Counted from the stretch's first letter, positions 24,601 to 33,600 are shown. The stretch is DNA of 64,000 nt from Asterias rubens (GCF_902459465.1 NC_047078.1:1116001-1180000); one strand, 5' to 3'. Made by a program: numbers and translations. The notes: generated by a model not told the origin, from the letters alone.

Positions 24601-27600
24601 TCTCCTGCATCAGCTGATGAAAAAACCTTCTCTTTTGAGGCCATTAAACTTTGGAGTAGTCTCCCCCACACTGCTCAAAAGAGGCTCACACATGGTGTAA
24701 CTGCAAACCTCACCCAACATGCTAAGTTTCAAATCCAACTCCCTCGTTCCCATGTTCAGGGATGTAATAGGCTGTTGAAAAAAAACCTGAACTATGAGCA
24801 CAAAGCGTGAAAGCTTGCGAGCGCAAAGCGTGTGAGCACAAAAGCTAGCGGTACGAAGCCTGCTTACATACATTAATCTTTGGTTTTAAAGGATTTGGGT
24901 ACCATTTCAAAATGTCCATAGATTTACATTAAACTTACAGGGTTTGAAGATAATGACAGTGGAAAGCTTCCCTTCAAATATTACTTACTGATGAGGTGCT
25001 GCAGTATTTGAGAAATGAGTAAAACAATGTCATGAAAATACGTTTGTAAATGCTTAAAATAATGTTCGTCTCATGAGACAAAAATTAGTTTCATGACATT
25101 CTTTTACTCATTTCCCAAAAACTACATCACCTCAGCACGTAATATTTTCAGGGAAGCTTTCTACTATCATTATCTTCAAACTGTGTAAGTTTGGTGTAAA
25201 TCTGTGGACATTGTGTTTTTTTGTCCTACAAAAGTTACATACACCCTTTAAAAGCACTACTCTGCAATTTGGAGAATTCCATATGCTTTTATCTTCATTT
25301 TGTTATGAATTTGATCTTAGTAAAAAAAAACTAAAAAAAAGAAGGAGAAATCAATCCCTGCATGTTGCCAACATACCAGCTCCAAGCATAGTAATACTGC
25401 TGTCTGCCTCCGGTGGTAGGACGTCGACCAACGCATTGCTGTGTTTGTGAAGAGCAACAGAGGCACTTGGCTTCAATAATTCCCTGTCTAGTGTGCTCAA
25501 GATTCTGACGTAGGAGTTGGACCCTGAAAATATAAAATGTATATTGAATTTAATATAGGGTAGATGGCCGTAGCTTTCGATCCAAACCGGAACTTCTTCA
25601 GAGGCATAAAACAAGTACAAACAAATACATATCCATTTATAGAAAAAGAGAGGGGAAAGGGATTAAGGGAAGGATCCAGAAGGAAGCGGGAAAATAACAG
25701 CCAATCAAAGTTTCTATTTCAGAAACAATAGTATATTGAATTTAATGCACGTGTGTGCAGCCACAATCGTGGGTTCACATTTTGTTGCTGTCTATTTTAT
25801 GAACCAAAGTTTGAAAATCACTGATGTACAGGTGTAGCAGCTGTCTCAATGTAATATATATGTCAATTAACAATCAGTGTGTCAATAAGGCAAATAAAGG
25901 GTAGAAACGAGTTCTTAAACAGCCATTTAAAACCAGCAGGATCGTGGCTGTGTGATAAAGCCCGAGCCGAAGACAAAAACGGACATTTAAAGGGATGCTG
26001 CAGTGAATTCAAATAAAACAGTTAATTTTGCTGTCATTTATTTCTGATATATTATGTATTGAACATCAATAAAATGTGTTTTGTTTTTCCCCCGACCTAT
26101 CTCACTTCTGTAATTAGCAAATAAGTCATGCCCCCCCCTTTTGTGGATTGTACCCGCCCCCTACCATCGACGTCACGTCGGGAATTCAAACATATCGTCG
26201 GCAAAAAGAGTCTGGTCCCTAACTACACGTGCCTAGGTACCAGGCCACACAGTGCACACGTCTCTATATGCACACAGCCAGGGGGCCCGACGGCTCGGGT
26301 GACCGACATGACATCACGTTTATGCAAATGAAGGCTCCCTTTTAGGGGTGGGGTGGGTTCCCCTAATCTCTTGAAAACCATTTTTAAAATACTTGCGCGT
26401 TTAATAAAAATAGAAAAAAATATTTCAGGTTTAAAAAATCATGTTTAATCGTTCAAACTATAAACAAAAAAACTGCAGCCACCCTTTAAGAACGAGTCAC
26501 TACTCTTTAATTTCCATTCATAAATACCCTTTTGTTGAAAGGCAAAACATTTTCACAATGTTAGACAATCTGCCATTTGTTTCCATTGCTATTTGGCGAA
26601 TTCTGCAAATTTTTGAAATCTTTTGCGAAAATGTTTAGTGTTCGTCGGGTGTTGAACATACATTACGTGCCACCGCTGATTTCCGACTGACAAATTGTTT
26701 TGCGCATGCGTGGATTTCTGCTGCTTGAAGAGCGCCCTCTTGTGTCAAAATCTTAAACAAAACAACGGTTGTAACCGAAAAGGGTTCGGAGAGACGCCCC
26801 TATTCAAAACAGCAAATCTAGTGGACCAATTAAACTATCGAACCAAAGCTATGAATATTTATGATAAAGAGGTCATAGTTCTTAAATAAAAATACAAGTG
26901 GCCATGTTTTTTTATGCGGCCGTGTGGATGGAATGGTAAACCGTGGGCGGTGTGTGTGTGGATTTGTATCAGCTGGGGCTGTGACGGGATGGTTTTTTTA
27001 GCCAATTTGAATCGTCAAAATCTAAGTAACGTGAATTTCCTCCGGGAAAAATGGACTTCACACGTAAGTATTATGTATTTAATAATATATTAATACAATA
27101 ATTAAAAGTGCAAACGCTTTCAAAACACTCTTCTGTTTATTTTGTGAATACCCATTTTTAGCACATGTCATGACAAGGAGGGCGCTTCACATGGCAAAAC
27201 AATACAGGTGGTTAATTTGTAATTGAGTAGATACTGTAGTTGTATGGGTCTACCATGATGAATAATGCACTCGATTTTTCCATATCACATATAGAGGATA
27301 CGTAAGACTTTTTTGAGATAAGGCAACTGAGAAATAAAACCGTAAAACTGTCAAACATAAATAACTAACGATGTGACAATTTCTGGCTTGGCTTGGTTTT
27401 TGGGGGTGCCATGATTTTTATCAATATCTGAAACTCAAGTGTGGGTACGTTTCCTTCAATTCCTCCATCCATGGTGGTGGTGTGGCCAAGTCACAGGTAC
27501 GCAAACAACTTTAGTTTTTCAATTTTTTCGTTCAACTTTTGTCAGTAAAATAACAAACTTTCATGAGATACTGGAAGTAACATCATAAATTAAAGTGAAT

Positions 27601-30600: not shown

Positions 30601-33600
30601 TGCCTTGTAGCTGTTCTGAGCATGTGGCTTAGTTGTTCCGTAGCCTTGTTCCCACTGACTTCTTGGAGTTTATCTTTCACAAGTTTTGTTCGCCGAAAGA
30701 GTGTTCGTTTTGAAACGTCATCGCTCGACTTTCTCGGATGAGTTATGCGTTGAACATACATTGCCTGTAATTGGAATGAAAGTAAAAAGATATCTTTCAG
30801 AATACTTTTTTTTAAAATGCAGACATAAAACTAAACATTTATTTTTAAAAAACATCCGTTTTTAGTCTTGTAATGAATTAGGCATTCATCATTTTAACTA
30901 ATGCAAACTTACCTTTCCACCTGTAGAAAGCCTAACTGTTCCTCCATCACTTTGTATTTGTTGTTTCAACAAAGTTGATGTCACCTGTTGACCCAACTTT
31001 CCAGACGCAGACATATTTCTCTTGATGAGGTCTCTGAATATGTGTTCATCTATATGTTGTGATGTCAGAGGGTCCTTACAATCATGGCTAGATGTACTAT
31101 TTAGCCAACTGCTTCGGTTGCAGGTTCTGCAGGTGACTTTTGCATTTCCGAGAATATTTAAAAAATATTCTCGGACAGGGCTGGTGTCCTTCAGACTTGT
31201 ATGTTTGTGACAGCTTGGACAAAGTACTGATGACGATGATGACCGGTTAAACACTACTTGTAAGCAGTCCAAACAGAAAATGTGATGGCACTGTGTTTCA
31301 ACCGGTCTGTTCAATATTTGGCTGCAAATTTGACAACATATCGATGACTCATCTGTTGTGAAGTTGTCACGAACAAATATTGTGGTTGTCTCAGCCAAAG
31401 TGTTGAAGTGCTGAGAAACTACTTCTTTGGCTGTTGCCTCATCTGTATCGAGTCGTTCCAGTCTGGCATACTTGGCTGCAGGCCGTCCAGTTTTCACTTC
31501 ATCAACTTTAGCACACACAGTGCAAGTTCCTCTTTCAGGATGGGGAGGCCACTCATTGGGGGGGTGATGGGGTTTTGGAAGGAACAAATTTGAGTAGCAA
31601 AGGTGACAGATTTGTGAGGGATGGCGATGATGTTCATCAGCTTGGATATTAATTCCATATTTTACTTGTATCTTTTCTGAGTAAGCACTGCATCTTTTAT
31701 TTTTTTTGCTTTTGTTTTTCCATTTTCGGATAGCATTGCCACACACTCTGCATAATTTCTCTAGATTTCTTGTATGTTCATGCTGGGCACTCATATTATT
31801 CTATACCTATAAAATGTAAAATTTGAAAGCAGTTATATTGTTAGTTGTTTTAATTTCCTTTTGGGGATTTGTTGTGTACATAAGAAAATGTACAGGTGTG
31901 AAAATCAATTAATCAAAGTAAAATAATATTAATATAATTTCCAATAAAAAAAATGGTTTGTTGTTTATCAAAGAAGTTAAATTAAAAAAATAATTATATT
32001 TGATAAATACTGATGTTAGAGTATGGGGGTAAGTGTTGTGGAAATCATAATTGTGAATTGTTTATCACTTAATTAATCAAGCTAAGTAACACCGTTCCAT
32101 TATTAAGACAAGAGATTAAGAAGTAAACAAATTGTAAACATTGTATTTTGAATAAAACATAGAATCCTTCTTAAATTAACCTAAAAAAATAGAATAGTTT
32201 TATCATCGTTTTATTTTTTAATAATATATTGAAAATTCAAAAGAATGTATTCAAAATTGCATATTGGGGGACTTTTGTTTTGACCAAGCCCACTAACAAA
32301 ATGAACAATTGGATACAATATCCGATCATCAGCGACCGTTCTTGTGGTGTGCATGCACAAAACACTGCGAACTATCGTGTACAATGTGTAAATGTACATG
32401 TAACACGCACTATGTGCACCGCGGAACAGCCGCAGAAGTCAACAAAACGTCAGGGAAATCCCGCTGATTTTGATCAATCCAGGGGGTTTGCAGTCATGAA
32501 AATATAATAATTTAACAGAAATGTGTTTTTTCTCTACAAAAAATATGTTTCTTTTATCAAATGAATTCAATTTCGTTCATAAACGCCCCCCAAACTCACC
32601 GTATAAAGTCGGATTTACGTTGCGCAGGCAGACGACATCTGTCAACAAAATGAGGGCTTTCCCGCGGTCAGGGGTCGGATAACAAGGGGGTGAGTCATTA
32701 TTATTACAAGAGTAAGGTTTAAAGAGTTGTTTATTGGTCAAAATTATCTCCAAATATGAATATTCAGTACCTTTTTTTACCCTTTGTTCCGTTCGGAAAC
32801 GTACAAATACAGCGGTAGGTCACAACTTATGAATAATTCATTTCAAGTTGACCTTCCATTGAAAGCCGCGCATGCGTAAAACCAAATGTCTTTCGTTGGT
32901 GCGTTCTGAACAGCGGTGGTGCGTGTTCACACATATTATTACGCGATCTTATTAATAGCTATGAATTGCCTTTCGCGCGCGCCCAACACGCGAAGCCAGC
33001 CTGTTTTAAACAGCTCCTGCTGGTCATTTTCAACCGTTTAAACTGCCGTGTGTGCCATGGGTTAATTCAAAGCCTCGGGTTTGAAAAAAGTTACACCAAA
33101 CTGCATGAAGGACCCAGGGAAGGATTCAGCTATCGATTTCACCAAACTCTTCCTAACTTTGGATTAATCTTAGTAATTAAGACGAGTTCTGTAACAATAG
33201 ACATTACAACGCATTGAACCCATCCTAAGTAAGGGCGAGTTACTCGTCTTAACTAACTCGAGATAGGATTATAATCCTAGCATTATGTGAAATCGCCTGT
33301 AGGTGTTTTAAGGAAGCTAAGTATTTTACACTGCACACACTGTCCCAAATTTGAACCCTGCCCAGCCTGCTTTAGAGCAACTGACCTGTTGTTGAGCCAA
33401 CGATGCCAGTGTGTTGGTCGACGGCTTCTAGGAATTGTCCGATAACGAGAGGAACGCTCTGGATGCGTTTGACTTCCTCCTGAGCATGAAGAAACTCCTT
33501 CTTCAGATTCTTCTGCTCATCTTTGATGTACTCCTCTTGGACTTCGTAAAATTCTATCTGTCGCTGAAGTTTCTGTGGAAGAGGGGCAAGACAAAATATA

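Follow-up and report, generated by a model that had tools for sequence, protein, structure and literature searches.

A probably autonomous Chapaev-group DNA transposon in a proteasome-subunit intron of the sea star Asterias rubens

We analysed a stretch of 64,000 nucleotides (nt) of Asterias rubens DNA (GCF_902459465.1 NC_047078.1:1116001-1180000), hereafter the window, and consider it likely that a 6,248-bp unit within it is a Chapaev-group DNA transposon, autonomous and of the cut-and-paste kind, belonging to the subgroup with a Chapa/NZD domain plus RING and recently inserted in sense orientation into an intron of Rpt3/PSMC4. This reading draws on the anatomy of the element, the splicing of its gene, the identity of its copies, the different flanks of those copies, and the homology and fold of the encoded protein. 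The element, complete and expressed, appears to be young and is a new member of a group already known. In the course of events that we propose, it would have entered the PSMC4 intron with duplication of GTGC, and its single gene would give a spliced mRNA and a 972-amino-acid transposase, with no RAG2-like partner encoded. To judge from RAG1 and Transib, this enzyme would bind both ends through a CAC-terminal 8-mer and an inner block of about 40 bp, nick at CAC, and excise the element, which would then be reintegrated with a 4-bp stagger.

The element, its ends and its insertion site

The window was read directly from 26500 to 33100 for the ends of the element and the target-site duplication. 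On the plus strand the element starts with CACCGCTG and ends with CAGCGGTG, giving CAC...GTG termini, and these ends are identical in three metagenome contigs that carry other copies (L001, L002 and L004). The GTGC duplication, which an earlier sequence-only reading of this DNA had called perfect, is indeed perfect at 4 bp in the window copy; the bases next outward are unmatched, and the chance of a 4-bp flank match is 1/256. Since the copies in L001, L002, L004 and a contig of run X13 start or diverge exactly at the same positions, the boundaries are fixed independently of the duplication. The same reading had described both termini as intact, which the independent copies bear out, with the qualification that perfect inversion of the two ends is limited to 8 bp. 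The features of the element and of the adjoining host exons are as follows.

26671-32918, minus strand (gene strand): whole, probably autonomous element, 6,248 bp; homology with L001, L002 and L004 ends at both positions
26667-26670, no strand: target-site duplication GTGC, left copy; direct reading
32919-32922, no strand: target-site duplication GTGC, right copy; direct reading
26671-26678, plus strand: left terminal 8-mer CACCGCTG, the 3' end of the element relative to the gene; direct reading and end alignment
26679-26718, plus strand: left subterminal block, includes GTTTTGCGCATGCGTGG; end alignment and shuffle test
32911-32918, minus strand: right terminal 8-mer, CACCGCTG on the minus strand; direct reading and end alignment
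32901-32910, minus strand: ten additional bases between 8-mer and subterminal block, right end only; end alignment
32861-32900, minus strand: right subterminal block, includes GTTTTACGCATGCGCGG on the minus strand; end alignment and shuffle test
33375-33575 (limits approximate), minus strand: host exon upstream of the insertion, 26S proteasome subunit 6B (Rpt3/PSMC4) residues ~45-109; expect value (E) 5e-31
25378-25530 (limits approximate), minus strand: host exon downstream of the insertion, Rpt3/PSMC4 residues ~106-156; E 3e-21

Consecutive Rpt3/PSMC4 exons thus stand on either side of the element. It therefore interrupts an intron of PSMC4, on the same strand as the host gene, and accounts for about 6.2 kb of the roughly 7.8 kb of that intron. 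A further Rpt3/PSMC4 exon, with a Walker A motif (GPPGCGKT), was seen at 24345-24587.

Beyond the terminal 8-mer, the next 42 positions of the two ends are alike at only 7 of 42 when compared at zero offset and at 28 of 42 (67%) at an offset of +10, a comparison in which none of 5,000 shuffles gave above 25 matches. The inner block common to both ends is about 40 bp long, with the core GTTTTRCGCATGCGYGG, and at the end upstream of the gene 10 extra bases separate it from the 8-mer. The asymmetry recurs identically in L001 and is a genuine property of this element's family, and it may be functional. Because both ends carry the same 8-mer and inner block, with spacers that differ by 10 bp, or one helical turn, they resemble a 12/23 pair. 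We regard as speculative and rather doubtful the extended proposal that a RAG2-less transposase follows a 12/23-like end rule, that asymmetric pairing predates the split of Chapaev, Transib and RAG, and that the element has also spread recently among sea stars. A palindrome, CGCATGCG, was observed in the inner block of both ends (26703-26710 and 32869-32876). It resembles an NRF1-type site and may be bound by the transposase, act as a promoter element, or do both.

The transposase gene, its transcripts and its relatives

The gene was rebuilt without the earlier coordinates by collecting open stretches on the minus strand and then enumerating frame-keeping GT..AG pairs between neighbours. One model was recovered by this splice search, with 10 exons, nine GT-AG introns and a coding sequence of 2,919 nt for 972 amino acids with no internal stop. 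Its donors are GTAAG, GTGAG, GTAAT, GTACG and GTATT, and its acceptors are pyrimidine-rich. The exons are listed in the order of the gene, with the predicted domains and residues.

30913-31794, minus strand: exon 1, amino acids 1-294, Chapa/NZD-like zinc domain, RING and zinc finger; Pfam, PDB sequence and protein-atlas matches
30484-30764, minus strand: exon 2; splice model and spliced RNA contig
30137-30343, minus strand: exon 3; splice model and spliced RNA contig
29764-30006, minus strand: exon 4, putative first catalytic Asp, GGD479KGG; DUF1280 E 7.5e-15, motif in every homologue covering the region
29590-29666, minus strand: exon 5, putative second catalytic Asp, FGD549YE; splice model and homologue alignment, aligns to RAG1 D708
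29272-29474, minus strand: exon 6, C568-x2-C571 (CLWC); homologue alignment, aligns to RAG1 C727 and C730
28800-29141, minus strand: exon 7, LH motif (PPSLHISLG) and long helical insertion; splice model, homologue alignment and AlphaFold model of a homologue
28476-28628, minus strand: exon 8; splice model and spliced RNA contig
28162-28345, minus strand: exon 9; splice model and spliced RNA contig
27673-28019, minus strand: exon 10 and stop codon, H882-x4-H887 and GEQGGE908S (putative catalytic Glu); 926 homologues, in register with RAG1 H937, H942 and E962

Four public runs, among them X15, which was guessed to be RNA, were compared with positions 26950-32940. X15 contains a 4,044-nt spliced contig whose nine joints equal the nine predicted introns (allowing 1-2 nt of ambiguity) and all read CT..AC in plus-strand orientation, corresponding to GT..AG on the gene strand. 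This contig differs from the window at 5 positions, starts at 31832, which is 38 nt upstream of the ATG, and reaches 364 nt beyond 26950, which takes it about 85 nt outside the element at the left. Depth in X15 is ~10 over exons and ~2-4 over introns and the upstream region. The transposase gene is transcribed and its nine introns are removed. The ten-exon, stop-free structure of the sequence-only reading was thus recovered both by the independent splice search and in the X15 contig, and none of the junctions seen in RNA gives a stop. Several small runs with the same organism label hold 0.54-0.71 of the words (short subsequences) of the coding span, a share that fits exon-only coverage because exons make up 0.71 of that span, and which hints at widespread expression of the transposase. 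Polyadenylated RNA from the organism coded D contributed 14 reads only. On the opposite strand, four reads of polyadenylated RNA in run X24 (95-99% alike) carry a plus-strand GT..AG joint, 27063>27728, between the segments 27052-27063 and 27728-27966. The joint brings ATGGACTTCACAC in frame with an 82-codon open reading frame (ORF) antisense to the last transposase exon, and could reflect an antisense transcript of the element or noise.

The N-terminal third of the protein was compared with known domains through exon 1. Pfam returned RING (E 5e-7) and RAG1_imp_bd (E 1.4e-3, below the Pfam cut-off), the latter being above cut-off in two homologues, P0024 and P0112. The best match among solved structures was full-length mouse RAG1, residues 141-372 (E 2.8e-10), and 1RMD, the RAG1 RING/zinc-finger dimerisation domain, matched at E 4.8e-9; the ordinary RING protein TRIM21 matched at E 2.9e-6 and the NZD structure 21WB more weakly (E 2e-3), so that RAG1-type structures rank ahead of or among ordinary RING proteins. 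The nearest protein-atlas clusters were all RAG1 N-terminal fragments (score 0.95, ~206 shared features), and a search with exon 1 found four relatives only. Judged from these matches, the N-terminal third is homologous to the non-core region of RAG1. To our knowledge, Chapaev transposases are the only ones besides the RAG1-like enzymes that keep a RAG1-type N-terminal zinc domain.

For the remainder of the protein, exon 10 found 926 relatives at E up to 1e-3 with phmmer. Long relatives come from the brittle star Amphiura, Branchiostoma lanceolatum, Nucella and Ephydatia, and one relative, P0162, is 72% identical; a word-indexed search with P0024 returned four matches only. Residues 269-952 of the spliced protein align with P0024, from Amphiura, at 35% identity (E 2e-130) across every exon junction, which provides a second, independent check of the gene model. 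The motifs GGD479KGG, FGD549YE, C568LWC571, H882MMEDH887 and E904QGGE908S were located in the 972-amino-acid product, where the catalytic residues and zinc ligands proposed from the sequence alone are all present. In alignments of 14-15 homologues, GGDxGG, GDY, PCxxC, LHIxLG, KxHxxExH and GEQGxE are invariant or nearly so. Homologues share the DUF1280 match of exon 4; single-exon Pfam matches to L36e, poxvirus F14 and a cytochrome were set aside as noise, the Pfam results being meaningful only for exons 1 and 4. Exon 10 alone had no match among PDB sequences, and PF12940 (RAG1 core) was matched neither by the exons at E up to 1 nor by ten homologues at E up to 0.01.

A profile of the family nevertheless had RAG1 as its best match among solved structures, at a marginal E of 0.08, and placed GDY...PCxxC on RAG1 D708...C727/C730 and HxxxxH...GxE on H937/H942...E962. 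The earlier statement that the local motifs differ from those of RAG1L/Transib thus needs qualifying, as both segments align in register with RAG1; the second register also points to E908 rather than E904 as the catalytic Glu. An AlphaFold (AF2) model of P0024 has a predicted local distance difference test score of 80-95 over most of the core. Foldseek with this model gave 49 significant matches, all to RAG1, BbRAGL or HzTransib: 43 RAG1 chains at E 2e-15 to 9e-12 (template-modelling score 0.52-0.67, normalised to the RAG1 chain), amphioxus BbRAGL at E 7.6e-10, and HzTransib at E 3.4e-7 to 1.9e-4. The next match was Hermes, at E 0.06, and identity in the structural alignments was 10-16%. On this sequence and model evidence, the C-terminal two thirds is predicted to be a RAG1/Transib-type core, an RNase-H-like DDE nuclease with D479, D549 and E908, and C568, C571, H882 and H887 would form its C2/H2 zinc site. 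Its catalytic chemistry is presumed by analogy.

Copies, family placement and competing explanations

The phmmer search with exon 10 also returned P0001, a 92-amino-acid ORF identical to the window, and exact look-up of this ORF led to four marine-metagenome contigs, which we compared with the window by BLAST. L001 matches 32925-26670 at 99.8% and has unrelated DNA beyond both sides; L002 has its first base exactly at 32918, as does the X13 contig; and L004 is alike as far as the left end, beyond which an unrelated flank, the third, takes over. Across introns and untranslated parts as well as exons, L001, L002 and L004 are 99.7-99.9% identical to the window element, and the window copy differs from other copies by 0.13-0.18% (8-11 positions in ~6 kb). 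The full coding sequence is intact in L001 and L002; its four differences from the window comprise three synonymous changes and one replacement, K671Q. Exact look-up with the exon 1 ORF brought up these contigs again, together with short internal ones. Within the window and the metagenome assemblies of L001 and L004 there are three different left-end flanks, and the element unit is present at three or more sites. ORFs in the flanks of L001 and L004 yielded nothing informative, and a 27-mer of the left end had no match in JGI metagenome contigs. L001 is the only other copy with both flanks, ACAC on one side and GTGG on the other; we treated these as uninformative, because short-read metagenome assembly through a 6.2-kb repeat can easily fuse the flanks of two copies.

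In run X1, genome-type contigs span 26641-28497 and 28470-32948 and so take in the element with exactly 30 nt on each side. Because 31-letter words cut 30 nt (k minus 1) outside the element, these contig ends suggest a branch against a form without it, which may be an empty allele or a paralogous empty site; they carry no information on the length of the duplication. A copy number from the X1 depth (~320) was set aside, as the single-copy depth of the run is no known quantity. Shares of element and right-flank words among coded organism labels, which depend on coverage as well as on presence, were as follows.

Organism A: element words 0.96; right-flank words 0.89
Organism B: element words 0.92; right-flank words 0.50
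Organism D: element words 0.65; not a holder of the right flank
Organism E: not a holder of the element; right-flank words 0.41-0.45

The element is thus far more alike between labels than is the adjoining intron, and is missing from one close relative. This distribution fits recent spread, possibly by horizontal transfer as published for Chapaev3, and we offer it as a lead. The X13 copy, from organism D, carries 26 additional nt after 27569 and lacks 2 nt at 29029, within exon 7, so that at least one organism D copy is broken. A distant, intronless relative was seen on metagenome and Logan contigs that represent one locus (L008 691-3941 and L009 561-3811). It consists of a 295-amino-acid ORF with a Chapa-type zinc motif and, 8 nt later, a 784-amino-acid DUF1280 core ORF, a layout suggestive of a single gene interrupted by a stop or a small intron; the 5.5-kb contig showed no recognisable inverted repeats.

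Chapaev transposons were reportedly described by Kapitonov and Jurka in 2007, and Branchiostoma is the genus of the original description. According to PMC4079192, they are recognised by termini of the form CAC...GTG, a duplication of 3-4 bp, and the motifs C(2)C, LH and H(4)H; Kapitonov and Koonin (2015, PMC4411706) describe a Chapa zinc domain, which in two subgroups precedes a RING as in RAG1. Chapaev elements are regarded as distant clades of the Transib superfamily (PMC4411706), the CMC superfamily is credited to Yuan and Wessler (2011) as cited in PMC4079192, and a 2026 preprint (10.64898/2026.01.24.700457) assigns the Chapa domain an NZD-like fold and states that no experimental work exists on this domain or on Chapaev systems. 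All testable published hallmarks were found, with the duplication length coming from one copy, and on these grounds the Chapaev assignment of the sequence-only reading is retained: by sequence, the element is best described as a RING-bearing Chapaev with a RAG1/Transib-type enzyme, outside the RAGL and Transib families. With the Chapa-plus-RING elements (PMC4411706, PMC4079192) it shares CAC...GTG ends, a duplication that is 4 bp long in the window copy, a DDE core that bears C(2)C, LH and H(4)H, the order of an N-terminal Chapa/NZD-like zinc domain and then RING, lancelet homologues, and only distant similarity to the RAG1/Transib core. It differs from them in representing a new host and, as judged from descriptions, a new family, and the 10-bp offset of the inner block is a feature of the sea-star element. 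The Chapaev3 families Merrow, Garfield and Conan belong to the wider group and share the C(2)C, LH and H(4)H motifs, and their repeated horizontal transfer is called to mind by the near-identical copies present here in several organism labels; most Chapaev3 transposases are single-exon, whereas the present gene has ten exons, and Chapaev3 duplicates 3 bp, TWA, between A and T, rather than the 4 bp GTGC (PMC4079192). N-RAG-TP of Aplysia californica (Panchin and Moroz 2008, as presented in PMC8355894) is likewise a mobile element with a RAG1 N-terminal-like region; compared by description, it is presented there as N-terminal-like sequence only, whereas the sea-star element has a full DDE core.

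With RAG1, RAG1L (ProtoRAG, RAGL-A/B) and Transib the element shares the full-length RAG1 order of zinc domain, RING, zinc finger and DDE core with C2/H2 site, catalytic and zinc residues in register, the family fold, and asymmetric ends that start with CAC. These likenesses, together with a core fold that matches RAG1, RAGL and Transib only and with RAG1 as best sequence match among solved structures, would also be expected of a RAG1-like (RAGL) or Transib element. We consider such membership highly improbable. The duplication of RAG1L and Transib elements is 5 bp, whereas that of the sea-star element is 4 bp; it has neither a RAG2-like gene nor room for one, since the ~1.0 and ~1.1 kb outside the transposase gene hold no ORF longer than 65 amino acids; DUF1280 is matched and PF12940 is not, the RAG1 profile match being marginal; the LH motif and the CxxC/Hx4H pattern are as listed for Chapaev (PMC4079192); and CAC is the only part of the RAG1 recombination signal sequence present, with no heptamer or nonamer beyond it.

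Several points weigh against a mobile Chapaev element. Present-day mobility, and with it the working transposase of the sequence-only reading, is what we infer, and transposition was not seen directly. The argument from expression is weakened because host transcription may feed the element, and the spliced RNA could stem from the window copy as part of the host pre-mRNA, which is highly expressed, instead of from a promoter of the element. The 4-bp duplication is that of the window copy, the L001 flanks being unmatched and possibly chimeric, and a 32-nt joined-flank pattern for the empty site was not found in JGI metagenome contigs. Copies from organism D are ~1.5% diverged and one has the 2-bp deletion in exon 7. 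The fold was obtained for P0024, which is 35% identical to the window protein, and the placement in Chapaev follows published descriptions rather than Repbase consensus sequences. An intact but immobile element, whose spliced RNA is a by-product of a housekeeping-gene intron and whose copies are left from an ended burst, would accommodate the sense position on the host strand, the low X15 coverage of introns and upstream region, the extension of that contig beyond the left end, the 14 organism D reads and the lack of a directly observed empty site. We hold this explanation to be unlikely, though it deserves to be taken seriously, in view of the minimal divergence of the window copy, the intact ORF of each of the three full copies, in which synonymous changes make up three of the four coding differences, the two intact ends, and the presence/absence branch suggested by X1. 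Domestication of a Chapaev transposase as a host gene would be compatible with a spliced gene and with the exon-like word shares of the small runs, but it is scarcely credible given terminal inverted repeats flanked by a 4-bp duplication, a whole 6.2-kb unit that recurs at 99.7-99.9% identity with different flanks, a location within the intron of another gene, and an organism E that holds 41-45% of the flank words and not the element. A single-copy conserved locus is likewise at odds with at least three different flanks and with a related label that has the flank without the element.

Other features of the window and bearing of the element

Elsewhere in the window, two intronless ORFs at 39369-40736 (minus strand, 455 amino acids) and 49328-50989 (plus strand, 553 amino acids) each give a match to glycosyltransferase family 92 (E 6e-20); over 450 nt they share ~75% identity, their orientation is inverted, and the second terminates in a 33-bp tandem array (50731-50976). 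A 189-amino-acid ORF at 55258-55827 (minus strand) has a C-type lectin domain (E 6.5e-14). Two dispersed repeat families, at 332-713, 7062-7439, 37461-37746, 38733-39101 and 59805-60169, and at 6434-6750, 24885-25251 and 62569-62942, have members of ~300-380 bp that are 76-91% alike and lie in both orientations. Their sequence is unrelated to the Chapaev element, and they may be miniature inverted-repeat transposable elements or short interspersed nuclear elements. A tandem array at 18260-18468 (82-bp unit, 2.5 copies) includes GGATTCGAACC and is tRNA-derived in appearance, and arrays at 5071-5301 (46-bp unit, 5 copies) and 9380-9621 (34-bp unit, 7 copies) have 98-99% identity. An Rfam scan of the window gave no match.

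As the family, its architecture and its link to RAG1 have already been published, the value of the Asterias rubens element is practical rather than conceptual. It offers a complete starting set for work on Chapaev, comprising a verified cDNA structure, both ends, a defined target site and near-identical sister copies, and its position in the PSMC4 intron supplies a precise orthologous site. The element bears on whether an enzyme of RAG1 architecture cuts and pastes DNA independently of RAG2, on the roles of the RING and zinc domains, and on the 10-bp asymmetry of the ends. Should synapsis prove to depend on that asymmetry, a transposase that has all RAG1 domains in their order but lacks RAG2 would be subject to a 12/23-like rule.

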